This document shows positions 22,141-64,000 of a stretch of 64,000 nt of DNA, piece by piece (position 1 is the first letter of the stretch; each line of letters starts with the position of its first letter). Origin of the DNA: Eutreptiella sp. 'Long Island Sound 2002' (taxonomy: Eukaryota > Protista > Euglenida); contig OZ038379.1 of NCBI GenBank assembly GCA_964036045.1, forward strand, positions 74,958,001 through 75,022,000. Reading direction: 5' to 3'. The translations under genes were made by a program, and so were the position numbers. The notes beneath the pieces were generated by a model. The model saw only the letters and a list, made by a program, of their open reading frames with translations. It had not been told where the DNA came from and did not search any database.

Positions 22141-22141
<1 letters not shown>

Positions 22142-22173
<32 letters not shown>
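22142..22173. repeat. (TG)16 microsatellite
   Basis: Direct reading. Confidence 0.95.
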
Positions 22174-22176
<3 letters not shown>

Positions 22177-33200: not shown

Positions 33201-33204
33201 GGGA

Positions 33205-38100: not shown

Positions 38101-41100
38101 GCAGTATTTCCACCGCCCATTGCCCCCAAGCACAGTGGTAGTGCATTGCAAGAGCTCGAACGCGCGCTGCCTCCCGGCAGTGTGGAAGTGTGTTCTAGGA
38201 GTTTCCCCTCCACTAACCACAAGCAGTGTGGCGTTGCGTTGCACAAACTCCACTCCCTACTGCCAAACGGCATGTGGCAGTGTATTGCGCGAGTTCCACT
38301 ACCCACTCCCCCCAAGCAGTTTAGTAGTACATTGCAGGAGTTCCACTGCCCAATGCCCCCGGGGACCGTGGCAATGCATTGCAGGAGTTCCAGTGCTCAC
38401 AACCCACGGCAAATGTGGCGCTTGATTGCACGTGTTCCATGGCCCATTGCCACCAAGAAGTGTGGCAGTGCATTGCACAAAATGGAACGCCCGCTGCTTG
38501 ATGCCGCTGCGGCAACGTGGCAGTGCGTTCAAGAAAACCCCTGCCCACTGAACACAGGCCCTGTGGCGGTTGCTTGCAGGATCTCCATTGCCCACTACCA
38601 AACGGCAGTGTGGCACTGTATTGCGGGACTTCCACTACCAACTGCCCCAAGGCAGTGTGGTACTACATTCAAGGAGTGCCATGGCCCATTGTGCACACAC
38701 ATTGTGGCAGTGTGTTGCAGGAATTCCACTGCCCACTGCCAACCGGCAGTGTGGAAGTGCATTGCAGGAGTTCCACTTCCCACTCCCCCAGCTAGTGTGG
38801 CACTGCTTGCGGGAGTTTGAACGCCCACTGCCCCAACGCCGTGGGGCGGCACATTGTAGGAGCTCCATTTCCCACTGCCCGTAGGCAATGTGGCAGTGCA
38901 TTGCACAAAGTCCGTTGCCCGTTGCCCACGGGCTGTGCGGAATTGCATTGCAGCAGTTCCACAGCCCGCTGCCCGCGGGCAGTGTGGCAGTGCATTGGAG
39001 GTGTTCCGCTGCCTACTGCCTGCACAAAGTGCGGCAATGCATTCCAAGAGTTCGACTGCACACTCCCCCCGGACAATGCAGCAGTGCATTACAAGAGTGC
39101 CACTCCCCAATGCCCCCAAGCATTACGGCAGCGAATTGCACGAGTCCCACGGCCCATTACCCCCAGGCGATGCGGCATGCATTACATGAGTTTCAGTGCC
39201 CATTATCCCCAGGCACTGTGGCAGTGCATTGCAAGATTTCCACTGCGCATTGCCCCCGAGAGCGTGGCAGTGCATTACCACAGTTCCACTGCCCAATGCC
39301 CCTAGGCAATGTGGCAGTGCATTGCAGAAGTTCCAGTGCCCATAACTCACAAACAATGTGGCAGTGCTTTGCAGTATTTCCACTGCCCATTGCCCCCAAG
39401 CACAGTGGTAGTGCATTGCAAGAGCTCGAACGCGCGCTGCCTCCCGGCAGTGTGGAAGTGTGTTTTAGGAGTTCCCCCTCAGCTAACCACAAGCAGTGTG
39501 GCGTTGCGTTGCACAAACTCCACTCCCTACTGCCAAGCGGCATGTGGCAGTGTATTGCGCGAGTTCCACTACCCACTCCCCCCAAGCAGTGTGGTAGTAC
39601 ATTGCAGGAGTTCCACTGCCCAATGCCCCTGGGGACCGTGGCAATGCATGGCAGGAGTTCCAGTGCTCACAACCCACGGCAAATGTGGCGCTTCATTGCA
39701 CGTGTTCCATGGCCCATTGCCACCAAGAAGTGTGGCAGTGCATTGCACAAAATGGAACGCCCGCTACTTGATGCCACTGCGGCAACGTGGCAGTGCGTTC
39801 AAGAAAACCCCTGCCCACTGAACACAGGCCCTGTGGCGGTTGCTTGCAGGATCTCCATTGCCCACTACCAAACGGCAGTGTGGCACTGTATTGCGGGACT
39901 TCCACTACCAACTGCCCCAAGGCAGTGTGGTACTACATTCAAGGAGTTCCATGGCCCATTGTGCACACACATTGTGGCAGTGTGTTGCAGGAATTCCACT
40001 GCCCACTGCCAACCGGCAGTGTGGAAGTGCATTGCAGGAGTTCCACTTCCCACTCCCCCAGCTAGTGTGGCATTGCTTGCGGGAGTTTGAACGCCCACTG
40101 CCCCAACGCCGTGGGGCGGCACATTGTAGGAGCTCCATTTCCCACTGCCCGTAGGCAATGTGGCAGTGCATTGCACAAAGTCCGTTGCCCGTTGCCCACG
40201 GGCTGTGCGGAATTGCATTGCAGCAGATCCACAGCCCGCTGCCCGCGGGCAGTGTGGCAGTGCATTGGAGGTGTTCCGCTGCCTACTGCCTGCAAAAAGT
40301 GCGGCAATGCATTCCAAGAGTTCGATTGCACACTCCCCCCGGACAATGCAGCAGTGCATTACAAGAGTGCCACTCCCCAATGCGCCCAAGCACTACGGCA
40401 GCGAATTGCACGAGTCCCACGGCCCATTACCCCCAGGCGATGCGGCATGCATTACATGAGTTTCAGTGCCCATTATCCCCAGGCACTGTGGCAGTGCATT
40501 GCAAGATTTCCACTGCGCATTGCCCCCGAGAGCGTGGCAGTGCATTACCACAGTTCCACTGCCCAATGCCCCTAGGCAATGTGGCAGTGCATTGCAGAAG
40601 TTCCAGTGCCCATAACTCACAAACAATGTGGCAGTGCTTTGCAGTATTTCCACTGCCCATTGCCCCCAAGCACAGTGGTAGTGCATTGCAAGAGCTCGAA
40701 CGCGCGATGCCTCCCGGCAGTGTGGAAGTGTGTTTTAGGAGTTCTCCCTCAGCTAACCACAAGCAGTGTGGCGTTGCGTTGCACAAACTCCACTCCCTAC
40801 TGCCAAACGGCATGTGGCAGTGTATTGCGCGAGTTCCACTACCCACTCCCCCCAAGCAGTGTGGTAGTACATTGCAGGAGTTCCACTGCCCAATGCCCCT
40901 GGGGACCGTGGCAATGCATTGCAGGAGTTCCAGTGCTCACAACCCACGGCAAATGTGGCGCTTCATTGCACGTGTTCCATGGCCCATTGCCACCAAGAAG
41001 TGTGGCAGTGCATTGCACAAAATGGAACGCCTGCTGCTTGATGCCGCTGCGGCAACGTGGCAGTGCGTTCAAGAAAACCCCTGCCCACTGAACACAGGCC

Positions 41101-44100
41101 CTGTGGCGGTTGCTTGCAGGATCTCCATTGCCCACTACCAAACGGCAGTGTGGCACTGTATTGCGGGACTTCCACTACCAACTGCCCCAAGGCAGTGTGG
41201 TACTACATTCAAGGAGTTCCATGGCCCATTGTGCACACACATTGTGGCAGTGTGTTGCAGGAATTCCACTGCCCACTGCCAACCGGCAGTGTGGATGTGC
41301 ATTGCAGGAGTTCCACTTCCCACTCCCCCAGCTAGTGTGGCATTGCTTGCGGGAGTTTGAACGCCCACTGCCCCAACGCCGTGGGGCGGCACATTGTAGG
41401 AGCTCCATTTCCCACTGCCCGTAGGCAATGTGGCAGTGCATTGCACAAAGTCCGTTGCCCGTTGCCCACGGGCTGTGCGGAATTGCATTGCAGCAGTTCC
41501 TCAGCCCGCTGCCCGCGGGCAGTGTGGCAGTGCATTGGAGGTGTTCTGCTGCCTACTGCCTGCAAAAAGTGCGGCAATGCATTCCAAGAGTTCGACTGCA
41601 CACTCCCCCCGGACAATGCAGCAGTGCATTACAAGAGTGCCACTCCCCAATGCCCCCAAGCATTACGGCAGCGAATTGCACGAGTCCCACGGCCCATTAC
41701 CCCCAGGCGATGCGGCATGCATTACATGAGTTTCAGTGCCCATTATCCCCAGGCACTGTGGCAGTGCATTGCAAGATTTCCACTGCGCATTGCCCCCGAG
41801 AGCGTGGCAGTGCATTACCAGAGTTCCACTGCCCAATGCCCCTAGGCAATGTGGCAGTGCATTGCAGAAGTTACAGTGCCCATAACTCACAAACAATGTG
41901 GCAGTGCTTTGCAGTATTTCCACTGCCCATTGCCCCCAAGCACAGTGGTAGTGCATTGCAAGAGCTCGAACGCGCGCTGCCTCCCGGCAGTGTGGAAGTG
42001 TGTTCTAGGAGTTCCCCCTCAGCTAACCACAAGCAGTGTGGCGTTGCGTTGCACAAACTCCACTCCCTACTGCCAAACGGCATGTGGCAGTGTATTGCGC
42101 GAGTTCCACTACCCACTCCCCCCAAGCAGTGTGGTAGTACATTGCAGGAATTCCACTGCCCAATGCCCCTGGGGACCGTGGCAATGCATTGCAGGAGTTC
42201 CAGTGCTCACAACCCACGGCAAATGTGGCGCTTCATTGCACGTGTTCCATGGCCCATTGCCACCAAGAAGTGTGGCAGTGCATTGCACAAAATGGAACGC
42301 CCGCTGCTTGATGCCGCTGCGGCAACGTGGCAGTGCGTTCAAGAAAACCCCTGCCCACTGAACACAGGCCCTGTGGCGGTTGCTTGCAGGATCTCCATTG
42401 CCCACTACCAAACGGCAGTGTGGCACTGTATTGCGGGACTTCCACTACCAACTGCCCCAAGGCAGTGTGGTACTACATTCAAGGAGTTCCATGGCCCATT
42501 GTGCACACACATTGTGGCAGTGTGTTGCAGGAATTCCACTGCCCACTGCCAACCGGCAGTGTGGAAGTGCATTGCAGGAGTTCCACTTCCCACTCCCCCA
42601 GCTAGTGTGGCATTGCTTGCGGGAGTTTGAACGCCCACTGCCCCAACGCCGTGGGGCGGCACATTGTAGGAGCTCCATTTCCCACTGCCCGTAGGCAATG
42701 TGGCAGTGCATTGCACAAAGTCCGTTGCCCGTTGCCCACGGGCTGTGCGGAATTGCATTGCAGCAGATCCACAGCCCGCTGCCCGCGGGCAGTGTGGCAG
42801 TGCATTGGAGGTGTTCCGCTGCCTACTGCCTGCAAAAAGTGCGGCAATGCATTCCAAGAGTTCGATTGCACACTCCCCCCGGACAATGCAGCAGTGCATT
42901 ACAAGAGTGCCACTCCCCAATGCCCCCAAGCACTACGGCAGCGAATTGCACGAGTCCCACGGCCCATTACCCCCAGGCGATGCGGCATGCATTACATGAG
43001 TTTCAGTGCCCATTATCCCCAGGCACTGTGGCAGTGCATTGCAAGATTTGCACTGCGCATTGCCCCCGAGAGCGTGGCAGTGCATTACCACAGTTCCACT
43101 GCCCAATGCCCCTAGGCAATGTGGCAGTGCATTGCAGAAGTTCCAGTGCCCATAACTCACAAACAATGTGGCAGTGCTTTGCAGTATTTCCACTGCCCAT
43201 TGCCCCCAAGCACAGTGGTAGTGCATTGCAAGAGCTCGAACGCGCGCTGCCTCCCGGCAGTGTGGAAGTGTGTTTTAGGAGTTCTCCCTCAGCTAACCAC
43301 AAGCAGTGTGGCGTTGCGTTGCACAAACTCCACTCCCTACTGCCAAACGGCATGTGGCAGTGTATTGCGCGAGTTCCACTACCCACTCCCCCCAAGCAGT
43401 GTGGTAGTACATTGCAGGAATTCCACTGCCCAATGCCCCTGGGGACCGTGGCAATGCATTGCAGGAGTTCCAGTGCTCACAACCCACGGCAAATGTGGCG
43501 CTTCATTGCACGTGTTCCATGGCCCATTGCCACCAAGAAGTGTGGCAGTGCATTGCACAAAATGGAACGCCTGCTGCTTGATGCCGCTGCGGCAACGTGG
43601 CAGTGCGTTCAAGAAAACCCCTGCCCACTGAACACAGGCCCTGTGGCGGTTGCTTGCAGGATCTCCATTGCCCACTACCAAACGGCAGTGTGGCACTGTA
43701 TTGCGGGACTTCCACTACCAACTGCCCCAAGGCAGTGTGGTACTACATTCAAGGAGTTCCATGGCCCGTTGTGCACACACATTGTGGCAGTGTGTTGCAG
43801 GAATTCCACTGCCCACTGCCAACCGGCAGTGTGGAAGTGCATTGCAGGAGTTCCACTTCCCACTCCCCCAGCTAGTGTGGCATTGCTTGCGGGAGTTTGA
43901 ACGCCCACTGCCCCAACGCCGTGGGGCGGCACATTGTAGGAGCTCCATTTCCCACTGCCCGTAGGCAATGTGGCAGTGCATTGCACAAAGTCCGTTGCCC
44001 GTTGCCCACGGGCTGTGCGGAATTGCATTGCAGCAGTTCCACAGCCCGCTGCCCGCGGGCAGTGTGGCAGTGCATTGGAGGTGTTCTGCTGCCTACTGCC

Positions 44101-47100
44101 TGCAAAAAGTGCGGCAATGCATTCCAAGAGTTCGACTGCACACTCCCCCCGGACAATGCAGCAGTGCATTACAAGAGTGCCACTCCCCAATGCCCCCAAG
44201 CATTACGGCAGCGAATTGCACGAGTCCCACGGCCCATTACCCCCAGGCGATGCGGCATGCATTACATGAGTTTCAGTGCCCATTATCCCCAGGCACTGTG
44301 GCAGTGCATTGCAAGATTTCCACTGCGCATTGCCCCCGAGAGCGTGGCAGTGCATTACCAGAGTTCCACTGCCCAATGCCCCTAGGCAATGTGGCAGTGC
44401 ATTGCAGAAGTTACAGTGCCCATAACTCACAAACAATGTGGCAGTGCTTTGCAGTATTTCCACTGCCCATTGCCCCCAAGCACAGTGGTAGTGCATTGCA
44501 AGAGCTCGAACGCGCGCTGCCTCCCGGCAGTGTGGAAGTGTGTTCTAGGAGTTCCCCCTCAGCTAACCACAAGCAGTGTGGCGTTGCGTTGCACAAACTC
44601 CACTCCCTACTGCCAAACGGCATGTGGCAGTGTATTGCGCGAGTTCCACTACCCACTCCCCCCAAGCAGTGTGGTAGTACATTGCAGGAATTCCACTGCC
44701 CAATGCCCCTGGGGACCGTGGCAATGCATTGCAGGAGTTCCAGTGCTCACAACCCACGGCAAATGTGGCGCTTCATTGCACGTGTTCCATGGCCCATTGC
44801 CACCAAGAAGTGTGGCAGTGCATTGCACAAAATGGAACGCCCGCTGCTTGATGCCGCTGCGGCAACGTGGCAGTGCGTTCAAGAAAACCCCTGCCCACTG
44901 AACACAGGCCCTGTGGCGGTTGCTTGCAGGATCTCCATTGCCCACTACCAAACGGCAGTGTGGCACTGTATTGCGGGACTTCCACTACCAACTGCCCCAA
45001 GGCAGTGTGGTACTACATTCAAGGAGTTCCATGGCCCGTTGTGCACACACATTGTGGCAGTGTGTTGCAGGAATTCCACTGCCCACTGCCAACCGGCAGT
45101 GTGGAAGTGCATTGCAGGAGTTCCACTTCCCACTCCCCCAAATAGTGTGGCACTGCTTGCGGGAGTTTGAACGCCCACTGCCCCAATGCCGTGTGGCGGC
45201 ACATTGTAGGAGCTCCATTTCCCACTGCCCGTAGGCAATGTGGCAGTGCATTACACAAAGTCCGTTGCCCGTCGCCCACGGGCTGTGCGGAATTGCGTTG
45301 CAGCAGTTCCGCAGCCCGCTGCCCGCGGGCAGTGTGGCAGTGCATTGGAGGTGTTCCGCTGCCTACTGCCTGCAAGAAGTGCGGCAATGCATTCCAAGAG
45401 TTCCACTGCCTAGTGCCCCTGGGAATTGTGGCACTGCAATGCAGGAGTATTGCCCACTACACCCAAGAAGTGTGGCAGTGCATTGCAGGGGTTCCAATGC
45501 CAACTCTCCATGGCCCGTGTGGCAGTGCATTGCACGTGTTCCATTGACCGCTGCCCGCAGATTCATGTGGCAGTGCAGTGGAGGGTGTTCACTGCCAAGT
45601 GCTTCCAGGCACTGAGGTAGTGCATTGCGGGATTCCACGGCAGGCACTGTGGCACTGCATTGCAGGAGTTCCACTGCGCACGGCCCCCCTGTAGTGTGGT
45701 ACTGCATTGCAGGCGTTCCATAGCCCACAGCCCGCATGTAGTGTGACCGTGCATTGCAGGAGTTCCAACGCAAAGTGGCCCCATGCAGCATGGCATTGCA
45801 TTGTGGAATTTTTAGTGCCCACTGCCCACAGGCACTGTGGCGGTACATTGCACGAGTTACACTCCTCATTGCCCAAGGCAGTGTGGTAGTGCATTGTAGA
45901 AGTTTGAACGCCCACTGCCCGCAGGCAGCGTGGCCCTGCATTGCAAGAGTTCCCCCACCTGCCCACCGCCACCAAGCAGTGCGGCAATACAATATATGAG
46001 TTTTGGTCGCCATTATCGCCAGACACTGTGGCGGTGCATTGCAAGATTTCCACGGCGCATTGCACCCAGCAACGCAGCAGTGCATTACAAGAGTTCCACT
46101 GCCAAATGCCCCTAGGCACCGTGGCGAAGTTCATTGCAGAAGTTCCAGTGCCCACAGCTCATAAACAATGTGGCAGTGCGTTGCAGGATTTCCAATGCCC
46201 GATGCCCCCAACGAGTGTGGCAGTGCATTGCAGGAGTTCCCCTACCCACTGCCGGCAAGCCATGTGGCAGTGCATTGAAGGAGTGGCCGTGGTCACTTGC
46301 CATAGGGAGTGTGGCACTGCATAGCACGACTTCCACGGCCCGCTTCCGCAGGCAGTGTGGCGGTGCATTGCAAGAATTCCGGCGCCTACTGCCCCCAGGC
46401 AGTGTGGCGGTGCATTACAAGACTTCCGCTCCCAAGTGCCCCCACGTCCTGTGGCGGTGCATGGCAGGAGTTCCACGCCCCACTACCCTCAGGCACTGCG
46501 GCATTTCCTTGCATTAGTTTCCCTACCCACCAATCCCAGTTAATGTGGCGGTGCATAGCAGGAGGTCCCCCAACTCAGTGCCCCAAGGCAGTTCGGCAGC
46601 GCATTACAAGAGATCCACCAAGCAATGCCCTTGGGCATTGTGACAATCAATTGCAATATTCCTACTGCCCACTGCCCGTAGGCAATGTGGCGCTGCATTG
46701 CAAGAGTTCCACTGCACGTTGCCCCTGGACAATGCAGCAGTTCCACTCCCCCATACCTACGAGCACTATGGCGGTGCATTGCACGAGTTCCACTGCCCCT
46801 TGCCCCCAAGCAGTGCGGCCATGCATTACATGAGTTTCAGTGCCCATTGCCCCAAGGCACTGTGGCGGTGCATTCCAAGATTTCCACTGCGCATTGCGCC
46901 CATGACCGCGGCAGTGCATTACAACAGCTCCACTGCCCAATGCCCCAGGCACTGTTGCAGTGCATTGCAGAAGTTCCAGTGCCCATAGCTCACAACGAAA
47001 ATGGCGGTGCATTGCAGTATTTCCACTGCCCATTGCCCCCAAGAGCTGTGGCAGTGCATTGCAGGAGTTGGAACGCTGGCTGCCTCCCGGCAATGTGGCA

Positions 47101-48190
47101 GTGCGTTCGAGATATCCCCTACCCACTGAAGATAGGCAGTGCGGCGGTGCGTGGCAGCAACTCCATTGCCCGGTGCCACACAACAGTGTGGCACTAGATT
47201 GCGGGACTTACACTACCAACTGCCCCAAGGCAGTGTGCTACTACATTGCAGGAGTTGCATGGCCCATTGTGCACACAAATTGTGGCGGTGCGTTGCACGA
47301 ATTCCACTGCCCAATGCCGACAGGAAGTGTGGAAGTGCATAGCAGGAGTTCCACTTCCCACTGCCCCGAGGCAGTGTGGGAGTGCTTGCGGGAGTTTGAA
47401 CGCCCACTGCCCCAACGCCGTGCGGCGGGTCATTGTAGGAGCTCTATTTTCCACTCCCCGTAGGCAATGTGGCAGTGCATTTCACGAAGTCCGCGGCCCG
47501 TTGCCCACGGGCGGTGTGGCAGTGCACTGCAAGAGTTGCACAGCCCGCTGCCCGCGGGCAGTGTGGCAGTGCATTGCACGGGGTCCACTACCTACTTCCT
47601 CCAAGCAATGCGGCAATCCTTTCGAAGAGTTCCATTGCCTAGTGCCCCCGGGCATTGTGAGGGCGTATTGCAGGAGTTCAAGTGCCTACCGCCCACCTCA
47701 CTGTGGCAGGGCAATGCATTATTTCCACTGCCCACTGCACCCAAGCAGTGTGGCACTGCATTGGGGGGGTTCCAATGCCCACTCTCCATAGGCAGTGTGC
47801 CAGTGTATTGCACGAGTTCCATTGACCACTCCCGCAGATTGGTGTGGCACTGCACCGGAGAATTTCCACTGCCCAGTGCTCCCAGGCACTGAGGTGGTGC
47901 ATTGCAGGGTTCCACGGCAGGCACTGTCGCAATGCATTGCACGAGTTCCACTACCCACAGCCCCCATGTAGTGTGGCAGTGCATTGTAGGAGTCCCAACG
48001 CCAAGTTCCCCCATGCAGCGTCGCGGTGCTTTCTAAGCGACTGCCCGCACCGTGGCGGTGCATTGCACGAGCTGCACCGCCCAGTGCCCGCACGCAATGT
48101 GGCTAAGCATTGCAGGAGTTTCACTGCCTACCGCCCCTATGAAGTGTGGCGGTACATTACCGGAGTTCCACCGCGCACGGCCCGTGGGCT
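35150..48190 (+). repeat. 47-bp satellite with a homogeneous 1270-bp higher-order repeat core (~37780-45400, ~6 copies)
   Basis: Monomer approximately ggcagtgtggcagtgcattgcaggagttccactgcccactgccccca. Near-identical ORFs recur at 38888, 40158, 41428, 42698 and 43968 (period 1270, about 27 x 47). Confidence 0.97.
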
Positions 48191-48739
48191 TTGAGGCAGT
48201 ATGTTGTTGGTTAATCTAGTATAGCTCACACCATGCAATGCAGCATGCACACACAGTGCAGTGCAGTGCAGAGCACGAAGCAATGCAACTTACGACACAA
48301 AGTGTACTGAGCCCAATAGACCGTTCTATGACAGTGCGGAGGCGTTGGAAGAGCAGCACCGGCCAAGTTCAACTGTGCACTGGTCCCGACTATACAAGAA
48401 CGCACTAGCACACTGCGCGCACTCAGACACACCCCCTCGTGTGTACTTGTACTAGTTGATAGACATCCCAGCCATTGCCTTCTTGCAACACCGCCTTAGG
48501 CACAGCGCCACACACCATAGTGCCATGTCCCACACCCCCACATACCACGACCCCACACACCACAACCCCATACACCGTGACCTACGATCACCAACTGGGC
48601 TAGACTCCCTGCCCCTCCAGCGTGGGAGCATGTGCCACAAGGGGCTGCCATCCCGCAAAGTTGCACCGTGAGCTGCAACCGGCGGCTGAGCTGGACTCGC
48701 CGTTCCCCCGGGATGTGAGCCCACGCCATAGGGCGCTAT

Positions 48740-50420
48740 GCACTGCCACATTGACTGAGGGCAGTGGGCATTAGAATTCTTGCACTGCACTGCCACACTG
48801 CCCGTCGGCAGCGGGCACTGGAACTCCTTAAATGCATTGCCACACTACGTGGGGGCAGTGGGCAGTGGAACTCCCTCAATGGACAGCCCCACTGCCTGTG
48901 GGCAGTGGGCGTTGCGGCTCCTCCAATGCACCGCCAGACTGCCTTGGGGCACGAGGCATTGGAACTCATGTAATGCACCCGTGGGTAATGGGCAGTGGAA
49001 CTCCTGCAATGCACCGTCACACTACCTAGGGGCAGCAAGCAGTGAAATTCCCGCAATGCACCGGCGCACTGATTGTGGGCAGCAAGAAGCCGAACTCCCG
49101 CTAGTCACCGCCACACTTCTTGTGGGCAGTGGAACTCCTGCAATGCACCACCAATTTGCGTGTGGGCCGTGGGCAGTGGAATTGTTGCAATGTACCACCA
49201 CAATGCCTATGGGCAGTGGGCAGCACAATTTATGCAACGCACCGCCACACTGCTTGTGGGCAGTTGGAAGCCGAACTCTTGCAAGTCACCGCCATACATC
49301 TAAAGTCAGCAGGCAGTGGAACTGCTGAAATGCATTACCACACTCCCTGCGTGTAACGGGCTATGGAACTGCTGCAATGCACCGCCACACCGCCTGTGGA
49401 CAGTGGGGAGTGGAACTCCTGCACTGCACAGCCACACTGCATGGGGGCGGTGAGCGCTGCAACTAATGCAATGCACCTCCACACCGCCTGTGGGCGATGG
49501 GCACTGGAACTTCTGCAATGCAACGCCACACTGCTTGGGGGTTGTGGGCAGTGACACTCTTGCCATTAACTGCCCCACTCCCGGGGATAGTTGGCAGTGG
49601 AACTGTTGCAATGGAGTCCCGCACCACCTAGGGGTGGTGGGTAGTGGAACTGCTGCAATACACCGCCATAGCGCCGGTGGGTAGTGGGCAGCCGAACTTT
49701 TGCGATGCGCTGCCACACTGCATAGGGGCAAAGGGCACTGCAACTCCCGCAATGCACTGCCACACTGCCTAGGGGCCGTGGGCAGTGGAATGCTGCAACG
49801 CAATGCCACACTAATTGTTGGTAGTGCTGGGTAATGCATCTCCTACAATGCTCGGCCACAATGTCTTGGGGCACTGGGCAGTGGCACTCCTGCCATTCAT
49901 TGCCACATACCAGGGTGACAATTGGCAATGGAACTATTGCAATACACTGCAACACCGCCTAAGGGCCGTGGGCAGTGGAACTTGTGCAATACACCGTCAC
50001 ACTACCTGTGGGCTCTAGGTAGGCGACCTCCTGCCATTGGCCACCGCACCGCCTACGGGCAGCGGGTAGTAGAATCCCCGCAATGCACCGCCATACCGCT
50101 TGCGGGCAGAGGGCGGTGGAACTCTTGCAACGCACCTCCATACCGCCAGTGGGCGGTGGGTAGTGGAACTTCTGCAATGCACCTCCACAACGTGAGTGGG
50201 CGGTGGGCAGTGGAACTCGTGCAATGCACCGCCACAGTGCCTGGGGCTTGTGCGCAGTGGAACTCCTGCCATTCACCGCAACACTCCCCGGGGACAGCGG
50301 TGGAATTCTTGCAATGCACACCCGCACTGCATGCCGGCACTAGGGAGTGAAACTTGTGCAATGCACTAACACACTGCGGGTGGGCACTGGGCAGTTGAAC
50401 TCCCGCAATGCACAGCCACA
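48740..50420 (-). repeat. Same 47-bp satellite in the opposite orientation
   Basis: Units read gggcagtggaactcctgcaatgcaccgccacactgc, the reverse complement of the upstream monomer. Confidence 0.9.
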
Positions 50421-50624
50421 CAAGCTTGTGTACAAAGCTTCATGTCCCATGTCAGATGCGGCACGTTGTGTTTGCAGTGTATACAACAAGATGTGTGATA
50501 TGTCTGATGTAGGTATGAAGCTTGGAGGAAGGGGGGGGTTGGTGTCAAAATGGGTGTGCAAAAAGTTGATGCCCCCCCATCAAAGAAAAAAAATGATCAA
50601 GGGGTTGGGAAAGATGAAGCCACA

Positions 50625-53060
50625 ATGGGTCCCCAAAGGTCCCCATGGGTCCCCATAGGTGTGAATAGCACCCCATTGACGCCCAAAGGACCCCTACGTG
50701 CCAATAGGTTCACATAGGTTTCATTAGGTCCCCATAGGCCCCCATAGGTCCCCAAAGGTCACCATAGGTGCCCATGGTTCCCCAAAGATCCCCATAGATG
50801 ACATTAGGTCCCCATAGGCCCGCAGAGGTGCCCATAGATCCACATAGGTCCCCATAGGCCCCAAGAGGTGCCCATTCGTTCCCATAGGTTCCCGTAGGCC
50901 CCCACAGGTGCCCATAGGTTCCCATAGGTGCCCAGACGACCCCATAGGTGCCCATAGGTGTCAATAGGTGCCCACGGGCCCCAATAGCTCCCCGACGGTC
51001 CCCATAGGTCCACGTAGGTCCCCATAGGTCCCCGTGGGTCCCCACAGACCCCAACAAGTACCCATAGGCCCCCATAGGTGCCAATGGGTCCCCAAAGGTC
51101 CCCATGGGTCCCCATAGGTACCAATAGCTCCCCCTTGGTGCCCAAGGTCCTCATAGGTGCCAATAGGTTCACAAAGATCCCCATAGGTCCCCATAGGTCC
51201 CCAAAGGTCACCATAGGTGCCAATGGTTCCGCGAAGATCCCCATAGATGACATTAGGTCCACATCGGCCCCCATACGTCCCCAAAGGTCCCCATAGGTCC
51301 ACGTAGGTCCCCATCGGTCCCCATGGGTCCCTACAGACCCCAATAAGTCCCCATAGGCCCCCATAGGTGCCAATGGGTCCCCAAAGGTCCCCATGGGTCC
51401 CCATAGGTGCCAATAGCTCCCCCTTTGTGCCCAAGGGTCCCCATAGGTGCCAATAAGTTCACAAAGGTCCCCATAGGCCCCCATATGTCCCCAAAGGTCA
51501 CCATAGGTGCCAATGGTTCCCCAAAGATCCCCATAGGTGATATTAGGTCCCCATAGGCCCCATAGGCGCCCGTCCCCATAGGTCCCCATCGGCCCCCACA
51601 GGTGCCCATGAGTTCCCATAGGTTCCCATACGTTCCCACATGTGCCCATAGGTCCCCATAGGTGACAATAGGTCCCCACGGGCGCCAACAGGTCCCCATA
51701 GGTCCACGTAGATCCCCATAGGTCTCCAAAGGTCTCCATAGGTTCCCGGAGCTGTCCAAAGGACCCTATAGTTCCCGGGGCGCTATAGGGTCCTTTGGAG
51801 AGCTCCAAATATCCACCCAATAACATGCAAAGCAATTGAGTTACTCAATTTACACCCAATGTACAGAAAGTTACAGAAATTTACGGCAGTTTTTGAGAAA
51901 GATACAAAATTTTACGTAATTTAGAGCGGAAACTAAATTTGGCCTCTGCCCCCCCCCCATTATTTCCCGAGCAAAGATCCCCATAGGTCACCGGTGGTCC
52001 CCACAGTCCGCCATAGGTCCACATAGGCCCGCATACGTCCCCACAGGCCCCCGTAGGTCCCCATAGGTCCCCAGAGCGCCCCAAAGGAGCCAATGGGTCC
52101 CCATAGGCCCCAATAGGTCCCATAGGTCGCCATAGGTCCCCGTAGGTCCCTATAGGCCCCCGCGGGTGCCCATAGATTCGCATAGGTCCCCATAGGTGCC
52201 AATGGGTCCCTACAGGTCCGCATGGGTGCCAATGGGTCCCCATAGGTCCCCAAGGGCCCCCAAAGGTCCCCATAGGTCCCCATAGGTCCCAAAAAGATCC
52301 GCATAGGCCCCCAAAGAGCCCCATAGGTCCCCATAGGTGCCAATTGGTCGCCATAGGCCCCCATAGGTGCCAATAAGTCCCCATAGGCCGCCATAAGTCC
52401 CCATAGGTGCCAATGGGTCCCCATAGGTGCCCATAGGGCCCCGTAGGTCCCCAATAGTTCCCGTTAGGTCCCCATAGGTCCCCATAGGTCCTTACAGTAC
52501 CCCGTAGGCCCCCTTAGGTCCCCATAGGCCACTACAGGTGCCCATAGGTCCCCATAGGTGGCAATGGGTCCCCAAAGTTCCCCATAGGCCCCTAAAGGAT
52601 CCAAGAGGTCCCCATAGGTCCCCACACGGTCCCCATAGGCCCCGAAAGGGCCCCACACGTCCCCATAGGTGCCAATACGTCCCCATAGGCTCCCATAGGT
52701 GCCAACAGGTCCCCATAGGCCCCCATACATCCCCATAGGTCCCCAAATGCCCCCATAGGTGCCAATGGGTCCCTATAGGTGCCCATAGGCCCACGTAGGT
52801 CCCCAAGAGTTCCCCGTAGGTCCCCATAGGTCCCCATAAGCCCCCATAGGTGCCAATAGGCCCTCGGTCCCCCTAGGGCCTGATAGGTTCCCAGGGGTCT
52901 ACAAAGCACCTTATAGGTCCCCATAGGTCCCCAAGCGTCCCAATTGGTCCCCATAGGACCCCATAGGTCCGCAAAGGCCCCCATTGGTCCCCACATGACC
53001 CCATAGGTCCCCATAGGTCCCCACAGGCCCCGATAAGTCCGCATAGGTCCCCATAGGTTC
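50625..53060. repeat. Diverged ~10-bp ataggtcccc satellite, interrupted by an AT-rich insert at ~51780-51970
   Basis: Same unit as 14767-15978. It is preceded (50445-50580) by a leader homologous to 14630-14765. Confidence 0.93.
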
Positions 53061-53069
53061 CTAGAGGGC

Positions 53070-56000
53070 CCATATCTACACCCTCCAAGGTTTCACCGCA
53101 CCCCTTGTAGAATAGTGTAGACGACCTCATGGTGTGAATCGTTGAAGGGCCTACACCCTTCAAGGGTTCACCGCATCACGTGTACACTAGCGTAAACCTC
53201 ATGGAGTGAATCCTTGAGGAGTCTGAAGTCTCCAAGGATTCACCGCATCACCTATACACTAATGTATAACTCATGCCGTGAATCTTTGGGGGGTCTAAAC
53301 TCAAAGGATTCACCGCATCACCTGTGCGGTAGTGGAAACCTCATGGGGTGAATCCTTGGAGGGGCTATACCTCTCAAGGAATCACAACAGGCATTGTAGA
53401 CAAGGTGTATAGGGGCAGACAATGAACATTGGAAAGGTGTACGCCGCTCCAACATTCATCGCGAGGGGTATATGGCCCTCCACAAAGGTTATAGGGGCAT
53501 GCGATGAACATTGGAAGGATGTACACCCCAGTGTACAGCCCGTGCGGTGAATCCTTGACGAGTCTACATCCTCCAAGGGTTCACGGCATCCACTCTAGAC
53601 TAGTGTATAACCCACACAAGGAATGCTTGAAGGGTCTAAACCCTCCAAAGTTTCACCGCATCAACTCTAGGTTAGTGTACAACTTGTGCGATGATACCTT
53701 GTAGGGTCTACACCGTCTAAGGATTCATCGCATCCACTTTGGACTATTCTACAGCCCATGCGATGAATCCTTGAAACGTTTGCACCTGTCATGGATTCAT
53801 CGCATCCACTTTAGCCTAGTGTAGAACCCCCGCGATGAATCCTTCGAGGGTCTACACCCTCCAAGGATTCATCCCATCCCATGTACACTACTGTATAGTC
53901 CACGCGATGTGTCCTTGGAGGGTCTACACCAATCAAGGACTCATCGCATAGACTATACATCAGTGTGAAGCCCATGGGATGAATCCATGGAGGGTCTACA
54001 ACCATCAAGGTGCCATCGCCTCAACTCTACATCATTGTACAGCCCATGCTGTGAATCCTTGGAGGGTCTACACCCTCCAAACATTCATCGCATCCAGTCT
54101 ATATCAGTGTAGAGCCCATGGGATGAAGACTTGGAGGGTCTACACCCTCCAATGATTCCTCGCATCCACTCAAGACTAGTGTAGAGCCCATGCGATGAAT
54201 TGTTGAAGGGTCTACACCCCCGAAAAATTTATCGCATCCACTCTAGACTATTGTACAGTCCATGCGATGTGTCCTTGGACGGTCTACAGCAATCAAGGAT
54301 TGATCGCATACACTATACATCGGTTTACAGCCCATTGGATGAATCAGTGGAGGGTCTACACCCATCAAGGCGCCATCGCATCCACTCGACATCAATGTGC
54401 AGCCCATGGGATGAATACTTGACGGGTCTACACGGATCAAGGATTCATCCCATGCACCCTAGACTAGTGTGCAACCGATGCGATGAATCCTTGAAGGGTC
54501 TAAACTCTCCAAGGAATCATCTATTCCACTCTAGACTGACGTACAACCCATGCGTTGCATCCTTGGAGGGTCTATACCGTGGAAGGATTCATCGCATGCA
54601 CTCTACATCAATGTACAGCCCACGCGATCAATCCTTGAAGGGTCTACACCCTCCAACAATTCATCGAATCCACTTCCCACTATTGTACAACCCACGAGAT
54701 GAATCCTTCAAGAGTCTACACCCTCCAAGGATTCATCGCATCCACTCTACACTAGTGTACAACCCATGTGATGAATCCTTGAAGGGTCTACCCCCTCCAA
54801 AGATTCATCGCATCCCCTCTAGACTAGTGCACAGCCCATGCGGTGAATCCTTCAAGGGTCTACAACCTCCACGGATTCATCGCATCCACTGTAGACTAGT
54901 GTGCAAGCCCTCCGAAGATTCACCGCATGGGTTGTACATTACTCTAGAGTGGATGCAATGAATTCTTGGAGCGTGTGCACCCTTCAAGGATTCATCGCAT
55001 GGGCTGTACACTAGTCTAGACCAGATGCGATGAATCCTTGGACGGTGTGGACCCCTCAAGGACTCCTCGCATGGGTTCCACACTAGTCTCGAGGGAATGC
55101 GATGAATCCTAGATGGGTGTAGACCCTCCAAAGATTCACCGCATGGGCAGTATACTAGTCTAGAGTGGATGCGATGAATCCTTAGGGAGTATGGACCCTC
55201 CAAGGATTCACTGCATGGGCTGTACAGTAGTGTACAGTGCATGCCATGAATCCTTGGAGGGTGTGCAGCATTCAAGGATTCATTGCATCGGCATTACATT
55301 AGTCTACAGTGGATGCGATGTATCCTTGGGGAGTATAGACCCTCCAAGGATTCACGGCATGGGCTGTACACTAGTCTAGAGTGGATGCAATGACTCTTGG
55401 GAGGGTGTAGACCCTCCAAGGATTCAGAGCATGGGCTATACACTAGTCTAGAGTGGATGCGATGAATCCTTGGACGGTGTAGACTCTTCAAGGATTCATC
55501 ACAAGGTTTCTACATGAGTGTAGAGTGGATGCGATGACCCCTTGGAGGGTGTAGACCCTTCAAAGATTCCTCGCATGGGTTCTACACTAGTGTAGATTGC
55601 ATGCGATGAATGCTTGATGGGTGTAGACCCTCCAAGGATTCACCGCATGGGCCGTAAACTAGTCTAGGGTGGATGCAATGAATCCTTGCTTGGTGTAGTC
55701 CCTCAAACGATTTGTCGCATGCGTTGTTCAATAGTCTAGAGTGGATGCGATGAATCCCTGGAGGGTGTAGACTCTTCAAGGATTCATCGCATGGGCTGTA
55801 CACTAGTGTAGAGTGGATGCGATGAATCCTTGGAGGGTGTCGACCCTCCAAGGATTCATCGCATGGCTTGTACACTAGTCTTGAGTGGATGTGATGAATC
55901 CTTGATGGGTGTAGACCCTCCAAGGCCTCATCGCATGGCTTGTATACTTGTCTACAGGGGATGCGATGAATCCTTGATGCAAGTAAACCCTACAAGGATC

Positions 56001-59000
56001 CATCGCATAGGGTCTACTCTAGGCTGGAATGGATGCGATGAATACTTGGAGGGTGTAGACCCTTCAAGGAATCATTGCATGGGCTATACAACAATCTAGA
56101 GTGGAGGTGATGAATTCTTGGAGGGTTTAGACAGGTACAGGGGATACAGGGGATACAGGGGATGCGATGGATCCTTGATGCAAGTAGACCCTGCAAGGAT
56201 CCATCGCATAGGGTCTACACTAGTCTGGAATGAATGCGATGAATACCTGGAGGGTGTAGACCCTTCAAGGATTCATTGCATGGGCTATACAGCAATCTAG
56301 AGTGGATGTGATGACTTCTTGGAGGGTTTAGACCCTTGAATGATTCATCGCATGGACTAGACACCAGTCTAGAGTAGATGCAATGAATCCTTGGAGAGTG
56401 TAGACCCCCCATGGATTCAAAGCATGGGCTGTACACTAGTCTAGAGTGGATGCGATAAATCGTTGGACGGTGTAGACTCTTCAAGGATTCATCACAAGGG
56501 TTCTACCCGAGTGTAGAGTAGATGCGATGACTCCTTGGAGAGTGTAGACGCTTCAAAGATTCCTCGCATGGGTTCCACACTAGTCTAGATTGCATGCGAT
56601 GAATGCTTGATGGGTATAGACCCTCCATGGATTCATCACATGGGCCGTAAACTAGTCTAGGGTGGATGCAAGAATTCCTTGCTCCGTGTAGTCCCTCAAA
56701 CGATTCATCGCATGCGTTGTTCAATAGTCTAGAGTGGATGCGATGAATGCCTGAAGTGTGTAGACCCTTCAAGGATTCATCGCATGGGCTGTACACTAGT
56801 CTAGAGTGGATGCGATGAATCCTTGGAGGGTGTCGACCCTCCAAGGATGTATCGCATGGCGTGTACACTAGTCTGGAGTGGAAGTGATGAATCCTTGATG
56901 GGTGTGGACCCTCCAAAGCCTCATCGCAAGGGTTGTATACTTGTCTACAAGCGATGCCATGGATCCTTGATGCATGTAGACCCTGCAAGGATCCATCGCA
57001 TAGGGTCTACACTAGTCTGGAATGGATGCGATGAATACTTGGAGGGTGTAGACCCTTCAACGATTCATTGCATGGGCTATACAACAATCTAGGGTGGATG
57101 TGATGAATTCTTGGAGGGTTTAGACCCTTGAACGATTCATCGCATGGACTGGACACCAGTCTAGAGTAGATGCAATGAATCCTTGGAGAGTGTAGACCCT
57201 CCAAGGATTCAAAGCATGGGTGGTACACTAGTCTACAGTGGATGCGATGAATCCATAGATGCTGTATACCCTTCAATGATTCATCGCAACGGCTGTGCAC
57301 CAGTGTAGAGTGGATGCGATCAAATCTTGGAGAGTCTGGACCCTCCAAGGATTCACTGCATGGGTTGTACAGTAGTGTACAGTGGATGCGATGAATCCTT
57401 GGAGGGTGTGGACCATTCAAGAAGTCATCGCATGGGCTTTACATTAGTCTACAGTGGATGCGATGTATCCTTGGGGAGTATAGACCCTCGAAGGATTCAC
57501 GGCGTGGGCTGTACACTAGTCTACAGTGGATGCGATGAATCTTGGGAGGGTGTAGACCCTCCAAGGCTTCAAAGCATGGGCTGTACAGTAGTCTAGAGTG
57601 GATGCGATAAATCCTTGGACGGAAAGACTCTTCAAGGATTCATCACAAGGGTTCTGCACGAATGTAGAGTGTATGTGATGACTCCTTGGAGAGTGTAGAC
57701 CCTTCGAAGATTCCTTGCATGGGTTCTACACTAGTCTAGATTGCATGCGATGAATGCTTGATGGGTGTAGACCCTCCAAGGATTCACCCCATGGGCCGTA
57801 AACTAGTCTAGGGTGGATGCAATGAATCCTTGCTTGGTGTAGTCCCTCAAACGATTGATCGCATGCGTTGTTCAATGATCTAGAGTGGATGCGATGAATC
57901 CCTGGAGGGTGTAGACTCTTCAAGGATTCATCGCATGGGCTGTACACTATTCTAGAGTGGATGCGATGAATCATTGCAGGGTGTCGACCCTCCAAGGATG
58001 TATTACATGGCCTGTACACTAGTCTAGAGTGGACGCGATGAATCCTTGATGGGTGTAGACCCTCCAAGGCCTCATCGCATGGCTTGTATACTTGTCTACA
58101 GGGGATGCGATGGATCCTGGATGCATGTAGACCGTGCAAGGATCCATCGCATAGGGTCTACACTAGTCTGGAATGAATGCGATGAATACTTGGAGGGTGT
58201 AGACCCTTCAAGGATTCATTGCATGGGCTATACAGCAATCTAGAGTGGAGGTGACGACTTCTTGGAGGGTTTAGACCCTTGAATGATTCATCGCATGGAC
58301 TGGACACCAGTCTAGAGTAGATGCAATGAATCCTTGGAGAGTGTAGACCCTCAAAGGACTCAAAGCATGGGCTGTACACTAGTCTAGAGTGGATGCGATA
58401 AATCCTTGGACGGTGTAGACTCTTCAAGGATTCATCATAAGGGTTCTACATGAGTGTAGAGTGGATGCGATGACTCCTTGGAGAGTGTAGACCCTTCAAA
58501 GATTCCTCGCATGGGTTCTACACTAGTCTAGATTGCATGCGATGAATGCTTGATGGGTATAGACCCTCCAAGGATTCACCGCATGGGCCTTAAACTAGTC
58601 TAGGGTGCATGCAATGAATCCTTGCTTGGTGTAGTCCCTCAAACGATTCATCGCATGTGATGTTTAATAGTCTAGAGTGGATGCCATGAATCCCTTGAGG
58701 GTGCACACCCTTCAAGGATTCATCGCATGGGCTGTACACTAGTCTAGAGTGGACGTGATGAATCCTTGATGGGTGTAGACCCTCCAAGGCCTCATCGCAT
58801 GGCTTGTATACTTGTCTACAACGGATGCCATGGATCCTTGTTGCATGTAGACCCTGCAAGGATCAATCGCATAGGGTCTACACTAGTGTGGAATGGATGC
58901 AATGAATACTTGGAGGGTGTAGACCCTTCAAGAATTCATTGCATGGGCTATACAACAATCTAGGGTGGATGTGATGAATTCTTGGAGGGTTTAGACCCTT

Positions 59001-62000
59001 GAATGATTCATCGCATGGACTGGACACCAGTCTAGAGTAGATGCAATGAATCCTGGGAGAGTGTAGACCCTCCAAGGATTCAAAGCATGGGTGGTACACT
59101 AGTCTAGAGTGGATGCGATGAATCCTTGGATGGTGTATACCCTTCAAGGATTCATCGCAACGGCTGTGCACCAGTCTAGAGTGGATGCAATGAATCCTTG
59201 GAGGGTGTAGACCCTTCAAGGATCCAAGACATGGGCTGTACACCAGTCTGGAGTGGATGCGATGAATCCTTGGAGGGTGTAGACCAATAAAGGATTCATC
59301 GCATGGGCTCTACACCAGTTTAGAGTGGATGCAATAAATCCTTGATGGGTGTAGACCCTCCAAGGATTCAAGCCATTGTATGTACACTAGTCTATAGGGG
59401 ATGCGTTTAATCCTTGATGGATGTAGACCTTGCAAGGATCGGTCGTATGGGGTCTACACGAGGCTAGTGTGCATGCGATGATTCCTTGAAGGGTCTAGAC
59501 CCTCCAAGGATTCATCGCATGGGCTGTACAATAGTCTAGAGTGGATGCGATGAATGCTTGGAGGCTGTAGACCCTTCAACGACTCATTGCATGGGTTCTA
59601 CACTAGTTGTAGATTGGACGCCATGAAACCTTGGAGGTTGTGGACCGTTCAACGATTCGCTGCATGGGTTGTACACTAGTCTAGAGGGGATAGCATGAAT
59701 CCTTGATGGGTGTAGACCCTCCAAGGATTCATTGCATTGCCTGTACACTACTCTACAGGGCATGCGATTAATCCTTGATGGATGTAGACCCTCCAAGGAT
59801 CCATCGCATAGGGTCTACACTCGTCTGGAGTGGATGCGATGATTCGTTGAACGGTCTAGACCCTGGAAGGATTGATCACATGAGCTGTATACTAGTCTAG
59901 AGTGGGTGCGATGAATCCTTGGAGGTTGTAGACCATTCAAAGATTCATCGCATGGGTTCTACACTAGTTCTAGCGTGGATGCGATGAATCCTTGGAGGGT
60001 GTAAACTCTTCAAGGATTCAGCGCATGGGTTGTACACTAGTCTAGACTGGATGTGATGAATCCTTGATGGGTGTAGACCCTCCAAAGATCCATCGCACGG
60101 GTTATACACTAGTCTAGAGTGAATGCGATGAATCTTTGGAGAGTGTAGACCCCCCAAGCATTTACCGCATAGGCTGCAGAGGCTGTGTACTAGTCGATAG
60201 TGGATGCGATGAATCCTTGATGGGTGTAGACCCTCATGGGATTCATCACATGGCCTATACCCTAGGTTATAGGGTATGCGATAAATCCATGATGGATGTA
60301 GACCCTGCAAGGATCCATCACACGGGGTCTAAACTAGTCGAGAGTGGATGCGATGAATCATTGGAGGGTGTAGACCCTTCAAAGGGTTAATTGCATGAGC
60401 TGTACACCAGTCTACGGTGGATGCGATGAATCCTTGACGGATGTAGACCCTCCAAAAATCCATCAAACTGGTTCCGCAATAATCTACACTGGATGCGATG
60501 AATCCTTGGAGGGCGTAGACCCTTCCACAGTTCCTCCCATAGGTTCTAAACTAGTCTGGACTGGATGCGATGAATCCTTGATGGGTGTAGACCCTCCAAG
60601 GATTCACCGCATCGGCCGTACACTAGTCTACAGTGGATGCACTCAATCCTTGGAGGTTGTAGACCCTCCAAGGATTCACTGCATGGGCTGTACACTTATG
60701 TACAGGGGATGCACTGAATCTTCCGAGTGTGTAGATTCTTCAAGAATTCATCGCATGGGTTGTACACTAGTCCAGAGTGGATGCCATGAATCCTTGGAGG
60801 GTGTAGACCCTCCAAAGATTGACTTCATGGGCGTAGACTCTTCAAGAATTCATCGCATATGGGCATATCCATATGGGCCGTACACTAGTCTATAGGGGAT
60901 GCGATTAATCTTTGATGGATGTAGACCCTCCAAGGATCCATCACATAGGGTCTACACTAGTCTGGAGTGGATGCGATGATTCGTTGAAGGGTCTAGACCC
61001 TCCAAGGATTCATCCCGTGGGCTCTATACTAGTCTAGAGTGGGTGCGATGAATCCTTGGAGGCTGTAGACCATTCAAAGATTCATCGCATGGGTTCTACA
61101 CTAGTTCTAGAGTGGAGGCGATGAATCCTTGGAGGGTGTAAACCCTTCAAGGATTCACCGCATGGGTCGTAGACCAGTCTAGACTGGATGCGATGAATCC
61201 TTGATGGGTGTAGACCCTGCAAGGATCCATCGCACGGGTTCTACGATAGTCTAGAGTGGATGCGATGAATCTTTGAAGCGTGTAGACCCTCCAAGCATTT
61301 ACCGCATAGGCTGCATAGGCTGTGTACTAGTCTACAGTGGATGCGATGAATCCTTGATGGGTGTAGACCCTGCAAGATCCATCGCACTGGTTCTAAACTA
61401 GTCGAGAGTGGATGCAATGACTCATTGGGGGTTGTAGACCCTTCAAGGATTGATTGCATGAGCTGTACACTAGTCTAAAGTGGATGCGATGAATCCTTGG
61501 TGGATGTAGACCCTCCACGGATCCATCAAACTGGTTCCACACTAGTCTAGAGTGGATTCGATCAATCCTTGGAGAGAGTAGACCCTTCAAGAGTTCCTTG
61601 CATAGGTTCTACACTAGTCTAGAGTGGATGCGATGAATCCTTGATGGGTGTAGACCCTCCAAGGATTCACCGCATGGGCGGAACACTGATGTACAGGGGA
61701 TGCAATGAATCCTTGGAGGGCGTACATTCTTCAAGAATTCATCGCATGGGTTCTACACTAGTCCACAGTGGATGCCATGAATCTTTGGAGGGTGTAGACT
61801 CTTCAAGGATTCACCGCATGGGTTGTACACTAGTATGGAGTGGATGCCGTGAGTCAATGGAGGGTGTACACGCACCAAGGATTCATCGCATGGGCTGTAC
61901 AATAGTCTAGAGTTGATGCGATGAATCCTCGATGGGTGTAAACCCTCCATCAACTCTAGACTACTGTACAGCCATTGCGATGAATCCTTCGAGGGTCTTC

Positions 62001-64000
62001 ATGGATGAATGATTTGTCGCATCCCGTGTGGAGCAGCGTAGAATGTGTGGATGCGAGGGGATGCATCCTCCAAGGAGTCATCCACTGGCATCCACTCTAG
62101 ACTAGTGTACAGCCCATGCGATCAATTCTTGGAGGGTCTACACCCATCAACGATTTATCACATCCACTCCATACTAGTGTACAGCCCATGCGGTGAATCC
62201 TTGGAGGGTGTACACCCTCCAAGCATTCATCGCATGCACTCTAGACTAGTGTACAGCCTAGGCGATGAATTCTTGAAGGGTCTACACCCTCCAAGGAGTC
62301 ATTGCATCCACTGTAGACTCGTATACAGCCCATGCGATGACTCCTTGAAGGGCCAGAACCCTCCAAGCATTCATTGAATCCACTCTACATCAATGTACAG
62401 CCCATGCGGTGAATCCTCGGAGGGTCTACACCCTCCAAAGATTTATCGCATCTACTGCAGACTAGTGTAGAACCCATGCGATGAATCCTTGAAGGGTCTA
62501 CAACCTCCAAGGATTCATCCCATCCCCTGTATATTAGTGTGCAACCCATGCGGTGAATCCTTGGAGGGTCTACACCCATCAAGGATTCATTGCATCCACA
62601 CTATACTAGTGTACAGCCCATGCTGTGAACGCTTGAGAAGTCCAGGCCCTCAAAGGATTCATCGCATCCACTTTAAATGAGTGCACCGCCCATGCGGTGA
62701 ATCGTGGGAGGGTCTACACCCTCCAAGCATTTATGGCATCCACTGTAGACTAGTGTAAAACCCATGCGATGAATCCTTGAAGGGTCTACAACCTCCAAAG
62801 ATTCATTCCATCCCGTGTAGACTAGTCATCAGTGAATGCGGTGAATCCTTGGGGTTTACGGCCTCCTAGGAGTCATCGCATCCGTCGTAGACTAGTGTAC
62901 ATCGCATGCGATGAATCCTTGAAGGGTCTACACCCACCAAGTATTCATGGTACCCATTCTAGATTGGTGTAGAACCCATGCGATGCATCCTTGAAGGGTC
63001 TACACCCTCCAAAGATGCATCACTTCCACTCTAGACTGGTGTACAGCCCATGCGATCAATTCTTGGAGGGTCTACATCTATCAACGATTCATCACATCAA
63101 CTCTAGACTAGTGTACGGCCCATGCGGTGAATCCATGGAGGGTCTACATCCTCCAAGCATTTCTCGCATCCACTCCAGACTGGTGTACAATCTATGCGAT
63201 GAATCCTTGAAGGGTCTACACTCTCCATGGTTTCATCGCATCCACTCTAGAATGGTATACAGCCCATGCGATGAATCCTTCAAGGGTCTGCACCCTCCAA
63301 AGATTCATCGCATCCACTCTGGACTGGTGTGGACCCCATGCGATGGTTTCCTTGGAGGATCTACACCCATCAATGATTCATGCCATCCCCTATAGACTAG
63401 TGTACAGCCCATGCGATGAATCCTTGGAGGATCTACACCCATGAAGGTTTCACCGCAACCGATCTAGACTAGTGTACAGCCCGTTTGATGAATCCTTGCA
63501 GGGTCTATACCTTCCAAGGCTTCATCCCATCGACTCTACACTAGTGTAGAACCCATGCAATGAATCTTTGAAGGGTCTGCACCCTTCAAAAATTCATCAC
63601 ATCCACTCTACATCAGTGTACAAAGCATGTGGTGAATCCTTGGAGGGTCTACAACCCCCAAGGATTCATCGCATTCACTCTACAGTAGTGTGCCACCCGT
63701 GCGATGAATGCTTGGAGGGTGCACACCCATGAAGGATTCATCGCATCCACTCTACACTAGTGTACAACCCATGCGATGAATCATGGAAGGGTCTACACCC
63801 TCCAACGATTCATTGCATCCACTCTAGACTAGTGTACAGCCCATGCGATGAATCGTTGAAGGGAGTACACCCTCAAAGGATTCATTGAATCAACTTTAGA
63901 TTAGTGTACAGCCCATACGATGAATCATTGGAGGGTATAAACACATCAAGGATTCATGTCATGCCCTCTAGACTAGTGTACAGCCCATGCGGTGAAACCG
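53070..64000. repeat. 72-bp palindromic satellite, ~150 monomers, running off the window end
   Basis: Consensus atgcgatgaatccttggagggt-gtag-accctccaaggattcatcgcat-gggctgtacactagtctagagtgg. It translates as a 24-aa repeat. Orientation flips at ~54930 and ~61950. Confidence 0.97.

Follow-up and report, generated by a model that had tools for sequence, protein, structure and literature searches.

Arms of a dispersed 72-bp inverted-repeat satellite of Eutreptiella covary between subfamily founders and not within arrays

A satellite whose monomer is largely a palindrome raises the question of whether its hairpins are kept for something they do, or are a trace of how the repeat was made. Such an array lies at the right-hand end of a 64,000-nt stretch of contig OZ038379.1 (positions 74,958,001 to 75,022,000 of the forward strand; assembly GCA_964036045.1) from the euglenid Eutreptiella sp. 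'Long Island Sound 2002', hereafter the window. The original prediction, made from the letters of the window, had described some 150 near-perfect hairpins, probably lying in an intron upstream of a UPF2 exon, and had proposed that they could be a structural satellite, cruciform-forming or centromere-like, or a source of hairpin RNA and small interfering RNA (siRNA). Our analysis led us to a different answer, which we consider probable: the array belongs to an old, low-copy, dispersed satellite family and is carried as a passenger within a 53-kb intron of the UPF2-like gene, its palindrome having been made at the founder stage and having decayed afterwards.

The existence and dimensions of the satellite were readily confirmed. 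Tandem Repeats Finder called period-72 arrays from 53083 to 63996, and in the 10 kb of contig directly after the window end (locus L009) the array continued for 212 bases and stopped at L009:212, so that it is ~11.1 kb long and not open-ended. The consensus monomer consists of a 22-bp arm (ATGCGATGAATCCTTGGAGGGT), the loop GTAG, the reverse-complement arm and a 24-bp spacer, and head-to-tail copies of this one monomer extend across kilobases; period calls and consensus thus bear out the predicted ~11-kb satellite with a 72-bp monomer, 22-bp stem, and 4-nt loop. The monomer is an inverted repeat, in which the two 22-bp arms are set apart alternately by the 4-nt loop and the 24-bp spacer, and when it is compared over its full length with its reverse complement, 60 of 72 positions agree. 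By ungapped matching to both arms, 143 hairpin units were placed in the window, with a spacing of exactly 72 in 125 of the 142 intervals between them. When the diverged left edge and the 212 extra bases are counted in, the whole array holds ~150 units, as had been estimated.

Calling these units near-perfect hairpins, however, was an overstatement. Stems in the window had a mean of 16.4 Watson-Crick pairs out of 22, an unbroken helix of at least 19 bp was found in just 3 of the 143 units, and a single unit was perfect (22/22), namely the stem at 55817-55864, whose sequence was as earlier described. Compensated double changes in the window numbered 25, compared to 46.9 expected under independence of the arms, and pairing within the same hairpin averaged 16.40 compared to 16.73 ± 0.08 for arms paired at random. 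The source of this deficit in cis is stem position 17, at which a G-T or A-C mismatch is present in most units. When 995 units were pooled (24 loci, 6 contigs), arms formed 16.7 of 22 pairs with their own partners and 17.0 to 17.1 with the arm of the neighboring unit (paired difference, 0.05 ± 0.06), while perfect stems made up 1.0% both in cis and with the neighbor's arm. Since pairing in cis was no better than with a neighbor, and perfect stems were equally rare, we conclude that stems are not maintained within arrays and that the perfect stem at 55817 is a chance survivor. The original prediction had put forward covariation of the arms as a check on its proposals, with independent arm mutations speaking against them. 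Within arrays the two arms are independent, with neither the compensated changes of the window nor the cis pairing of the 995 units in excess, and individual copies do not show the compensated changes by which a structured RNA would keep its stem.

These results bear directly on the proposal of a hairpin-RNA or siRNA source, under which transcription of the UPF2 pre-mRNA would include the array, each unit would offer Dicer a ~22-bp stem, and the array's blocks of opposite orientation (A and B, described below) would form long duplexes with each other. An intronic array would probably be transcribed, RNA interference is functional in Euglena gracilis, and the units fold well above chance, with a mean RNA folding energy for the 56-nt hairpin stretch of -22 kcal/mol compared to -10.4 kcal/mol for shuffled sequences. 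However, the stems are not kept up within arrays and long unbroken helices are as rare as given above, the A and B blocks are ~73-75% alike and would make poor long duplexes, and the family is bound to no single gene or strand. A permissive Rfam scan of positions 50000 to 64000 returned 76 matches to generic microRNA-hairpin models and no ribozyme, all far below the gathering score; the best of them, to a microRNA hairpin model, reached 43.1 bits where the gathering score is 500. With most stems broken at the sequence level, a role as hairpin-RNA source appears unsupported, and we regard it as very unlikely.

A different picture was obtained when subfamilies were compared with each other. Clustering of the 995 units gave ten subfamilies with at least 8 members, whose consensuses keep 17 to 21 of the 22 pairs (19 to 21 in eight of the ten, and 17 in one that is confined to the window). 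Relative to the global consensus, double changes in which pairing is retained were found at stem positions 2, 7, 10, 13, 15, and 17, and a double change at position 12 keeps pairing in one subfamily and loses it in another. One of the double changes is a mirrored CC>A / GG>T with a matching shift in length. In the left-edge units of the window array, ATG/CAT of the arms is replaced by GTG/CAC, a compensated change that turns the A:T pair at stem position 6 into G:C. In a covariation alignment of 28 representative units (three real units per subfamily), 45 cells were changed on both sides, compared to 19.4 ± 4.2 in shuffles (0/500), and the covariation score was 0.238, compared to 0.134 in shuffles (0/500); structures slid out of register scored far lower. 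The arms, then, covary between subfamily founders only, and not within arrays.

The loop was flipped relative to the spacers in 10 of the 995 units, and 9 of these 10 also carried the flipped position-17 mismatch, compared to 22% of concordant units. The ten are not independent events, since eight of them lie in one locus, inside a duplicated segment of 1,725 bp. Some units with loop and inner stem inverted relative to the spacers were seen at L030:3941-7523 (contig 4, ~100.807 Mb) and at L011:5050-5255. In the former, the pattern recurs at an offset of 1,725 bp, a sign that a segment was duplicated locally within the array.

We propose that the two arms would have been made alike before or during each amplification, the palindrome being a property of the founder monomers. 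The likeliest symmetrizing step would be template switching between the arms during replication, which we infer from the pattern of changes; gene conversion between the arms could be an alternative. Such a step would copy substitutions, and even small insertions or deletions, from one arm to the other, and could invert the loop. Homogenized arms together with an inverted spacer are the described signature of template switching by a polymerase at short inverted repeats (PMC8604942), and quasipalindrome mutations are likewise ascribed to switching between such repeats (PMC7202029). We would expect template switching to shape founders and to occur too seldom to leave a visible trace within arrays. 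Units that have been amplified and dispersed would decay by independent point mutation, with neither selection nor repair acting on single stems and with no array-wide homogenization after amplification.

Several points weigh against this interpretation. The shuffle control is uncorrected for relatedness, which inflates both the count of cells changed on both sides and the covariation score. Pairs with a double change numbered 9, compared to 6.8 ± 1.5 in shuffles (62/500), which is not significant by itself, and the covariation between subfamilies comes from ~7 separate events. In several arrays, arms did pair better in cis than at random (z of 4 to 5.6); this was attributed to mixed subfamilies within those arrays. 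Selection on founders, for example through a protein such as a transposase that binds both arms, could give the same pattern as a symmetrizing step. Lastly, it is from the decay of its sequence that we judge the array to be, most probably, carried neutrally in its very large intron today. It may also be that a palindrome is needed for amplification itself. Only monomers with freshly identical arms would then be copied into new arrays, by hairpin-primed or rolling-circle copying carried out, for example, by Helitron-type or other hairpin-recognizing enzymes, and the family would be a self-propagating hairpin satellite; we think this distinctly unlikely.

Returning to the reading of symmetrical founders followed by decay, we considered the age, size, and spread of the family. 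Pairwise identity of units was 0.72 within arrays and 0.70 between arrays, and units of the window were 0.74 identical to each other and 0.67 to 0.78 identical to units on other contigs. Concerted evolution, a greater likeness within than between arrays that is usual for satellites without being required of them, was thus not found. Arm sequences within 3 mismatches of the consensus numbered 6,647 across the genome, compared to 2 for the reversed control, and since this filter passes 60% of known arms, the family can be put at ~5,500 units and 0.4 Mb in a genome of 2.28 Gb (~0.017%). Arrays were located at no fewer than 37 places on 8 large contigs (1, 2, 3, 4, 5, 7, 10, and 12), with several per contig, and the window array is one of the larger ones in the family.

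These figures also bear on the suggestion that the array is a structural satellite, acting through cruciform extrusion or in a centromere or pericentromere. Dyad symmetry has been described for many centromeric satellites (PMC5889037), which gives the idea some appeal. However, a family that is small, old, and scattered over so many places, with several arrays per large contig, counts against a centromeric role. We found no major homogenized array at one locus per chromosome (0.4 Mb in all, at ~72% identity) and no higher-order period, the identity between units being flat at ~0.755 over lags 1 to 12 with a slight rise at lags 10 and 11. The copy in the window, moreover, sits in the intron of a gene. 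With stems that average 5 to 6 mismatches, extrusion of cruciforms would also be unlikely. On the sequence data, then, the centromere-like role suggested originally appears unlikely, and we consider a structural function of either kind extremely improbable.

Some arrays elsewhere in the genome deserve separate mention. Two arrays on contig 1 (L014 and L015, at 25.29 and 31.95 Mb) have flanks that are 98-99% identical and in inverted orientation, indicating that the two go back to a large, recent segmental duplication. The contig 12 arrays at 60.297 and 60.351 Mb (L005 and L008) have near-identical unit statistics and type strings. On contig 2, the array of L021 (76,808,000-76,817,999) measures at least 10 kb, and the area that begins ~2 kb past its end has no exact consensus arm among the matches listed. 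On the same contig, an interstitial run of 13 AACCCT repeats, a telomere-type hexamer, lies ~320 bp from the end of another array (L016:5459-5538, ~27.175 Mb).

The surroundings of the arrays were informative on whether the family derives from a mobile element, the arms being the terminal or subterminal repeats of a miniature inverted-repeat transposable element (MITE), a foldback, a hAT or a Helitron-type element, and the arrays its tandemized or internal repeats. Arm covariation at the level of founders is what would be expected if one transposase binds both ends, and hAT elements (1,760 candidates) and Helitrons (863 candidates, many of which have ~1,900-aa open frames) both abound in the genome. 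Arrays also recur beside the same two other satellites, as though moved as a composite block. A 23-bp G-rich, partly palindromic satellite (G9 CTATGAAATTGAT) adjoins the 72-bp array at 5 of 20 fetched 10-kb loci and also in the window's own array; these 6 places are spread over several contigs, and in 4 of them the relative orientation is the same. A 10-bp satellite adjoins it at 2 of the 20 loci (L011 and L018) and in the window. This recurrence suggests dispersal as composite blocks. However, the parts of the flanks that are shared among the 20 loci are other satellites and include no transposon, and the ten longest open frames in these flanks have no significant Pfam domain. Five short arrays both start and stop at arbitrary points of the monomer, with no target-site duplication, and arm-like sequence is absent from the rest of the first 53 kb of the window even when 6 mismatches are allowed. 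None of 150 scored hAT matches lies within ~80 kb of a known array, and the genome searches for hAT and Helitron elements gave no tie to the arrays and no parent transposon. The further alternative raised in the original prediction, a recent amplification of a known MITE, is likewise unsupported, the family being old and no element boundaries or target-site duplications having been found. Taken as a whole, an origin from a mobile element seems to us rather unlikely.

As an observation in its own right, the Helitron Rep domains among the 863 candidates include dozens with uninterrupted frames of 1,400 to 2,000 aa, some of them clustered within tens of kb (for example on contig 11, 29.05-29.24 Mb). 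These features suggest recent activity.

That the window array is a passenger in an intron was examined in the UPF2-like gene itself. Positions 93-194 of the MIF4G profile are encoded on the minus strand at 21145-21423 of the window, and positions 30-84 at L010:504-692, which lies further along the same contig, 10.5 kb past the end of the window. The last bases of the upstream exon read ...AACCAG, with the GT of the donor at L010:482, and the intron closes with ...GATGCAG at 21421; the exons join in frame (...SNKNQ/INIEEKIRNIRF...). With the matching half of the domain found past the window and an in-frame GT-AG join, the predicted placement of the array in an intron upstream of the MIF4G exon is supported. 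UPF2 is a core factor of nonsense-mediated decay. The 72-bp array makes up 21% of the 53,062-nt intron. Over its whole length (21421-64000 and on to L010:482), this intron is mostly satellites, of 47-bp, 10-bp, 72-bp, and 23-bp families.

Two further features of euglenid genomes were considered. Nonconventional introns of Euglena carry the signature 5'-N3CDG ... CH'GN5-6|R with base-paired ends (PMC12501133). No complementary CDG/CHG pair at the required spacing was found in any rotation of the monomer, with the consensus read in both orientations, and the host intron is itself of the GT-AG type. A 21-mer that we take to be the 3' part of the Euglena gracilis spliced leader occurred 5,817 times in the genome, compared to 0 for its control. 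Along contig 1, these 21-mers occur on either strand, as scattered single copies and not just in tandem gene clusters, and the scattered copies could be dispersed genes for spliced-leader RNA or retrocopies of trans-spliced mRNAs.

Within the window, the array is composed of three orientation blocks, with orientation A at 53129-54838, B at 54953-61844, and A again from 61916 onward (Table 1). Junction 1 lacks the other arm, the loop, and 3 nt, and the spacing of units there is 115. No mirror blocks of high identity were found around the two junctions, where all sequence aligns at ~73-75%, indicating either that the inversion is old or that the units moved had already diverged. In the history we propose, the central 7 kb of the array would have been inverted later, with breakpoints in hairpins, and each junction hairpin would have lost part of one arm. 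A related 82-bp variant borders the 72-bp array on both sides (53386-53530 and L009:219-565); outward of it lie the 10-bp satellite on the left and the 23-bp G-rich satellite on the right.

Table 1. Features of the window and its continuation; plain coordinates refer to the window, those with an L prefix to the named locus
Feature	Coordinates	Strand	Details
UPF2-like exon, MIF4G profile positions 93-194	21145..21420	-	E 1.4e-17
In-window part of the 53,062-nt GT-AG intron of the UPF2-like gene	21421..64000	-	acceptor AG 21422-21421; donor GT L010:482-481
10-bp satellite GGTCCCCATA adjoining the array	50628..53058
Left edge, ~4 units of a diverged 72-bp subfamily	53083..53385		arms GTG/CAC where others have ATG/CAT
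~2 units of the related longer variant, 82-bp type	53386..53530		arms GATGAA(C/T)ATTGGAAGG
Block A1, ~19 units, orientation A	53530..54909		loop CTAC, spacer CCACTCTAGACTAGTGTACAGCCC
Inversion junction 1	54910..54928		lone truncated 19-nt arm between A-type and B-type spacers
Block B, ~95 units, opposite orientation	54929..61949		loop GTAG, spacer GGGCTGTACACTAGTCTAGAGTGG
Perfect 22-bp stem, the only one in the window	55817..55864		loop GTCG; RNA folding energy -43.4 / -41.0 kcal/mol (two strands)
Inversion junction 2	61916..61973		left arm, loop GTAA, 8 nt of right arm, then directly A-type spacer
Block A2, ~27 units in the window, orientation A	61974..64000		continues to L009:212; first ~110 bases disturbed
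23-bp satellite beside 72-bp arrays	L009:629-1197; left flanks of L011, L016, L027; right flanks of L022, L024

Apart from the contrast between founders and arrays and the large intron, the copy in the window looks ordinary. That contrast is a clean natural one, since the arms covary between founders and decay independently inside arrays, and it separates the process that makes palindromes from the selection that would keep them. It thereby cautions against inferring function from a palindromic consensus. The locus also documents a 53-kb, satellite-packed GT-AG intron in a core gene of mRNA surveillance.

In the published chromosome-level genome of Euglena, tandem repeats make up 9.85% of the sequence and the word 'satellite' is absent (PMC11252322), and our literature search found no description of Euglena satellites or of the 72-bp family. 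An exact 18-mer of the arm gave 23 single chance matches in metagenome contigs and no array.

With regard to how the founders were shaped, the subfamilies resemble the products of template switching and quasipalindrome correction (PMC8604942, PMC7202029) in their mirrored, multi-base changes that equalize the arms and, in some units, in an inverted loop plus inner stem. The process described there, however, concerns single inverted repeats in yeast and Escherichia coli genes, whereas here we infer it to have shaped the founders of a satellite. With regard to the arrays, dyad-symmetric satellite DNAs are known (PMC5889037), as are the macro-dyad satellite regions of Tribolium madens (PMC13081366), and the 72-bp family is like these in having a monomer with an inverted repeat that can fold into a hairpin or cruciform and in having blocks in opposite orientation. 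Unlike the satellites of PMC5889037, whose dyads are shorter than 10 bp and which are centromeric, it has a 22-bp stem and is tiny, dispersed, and unhomogenized, with the window copy intronic. With satellites derived from transposons (MITE, foldback, and Helentron-carried; PMC5932611, PMC7492417, PMC12628747) it shares short scattered arrays, inverted-repeat arms, and recurring neighbor repeats, but it differs from them in its arbitrary ends and in that neither a parent element nor a target-site duplication or coding partner turned up. The 72-bp family is thus a real satellite, apparently undescribed in the literature, whose closest known kinds are the dyad-symmetric and the transposon-derived dispersed satellites.

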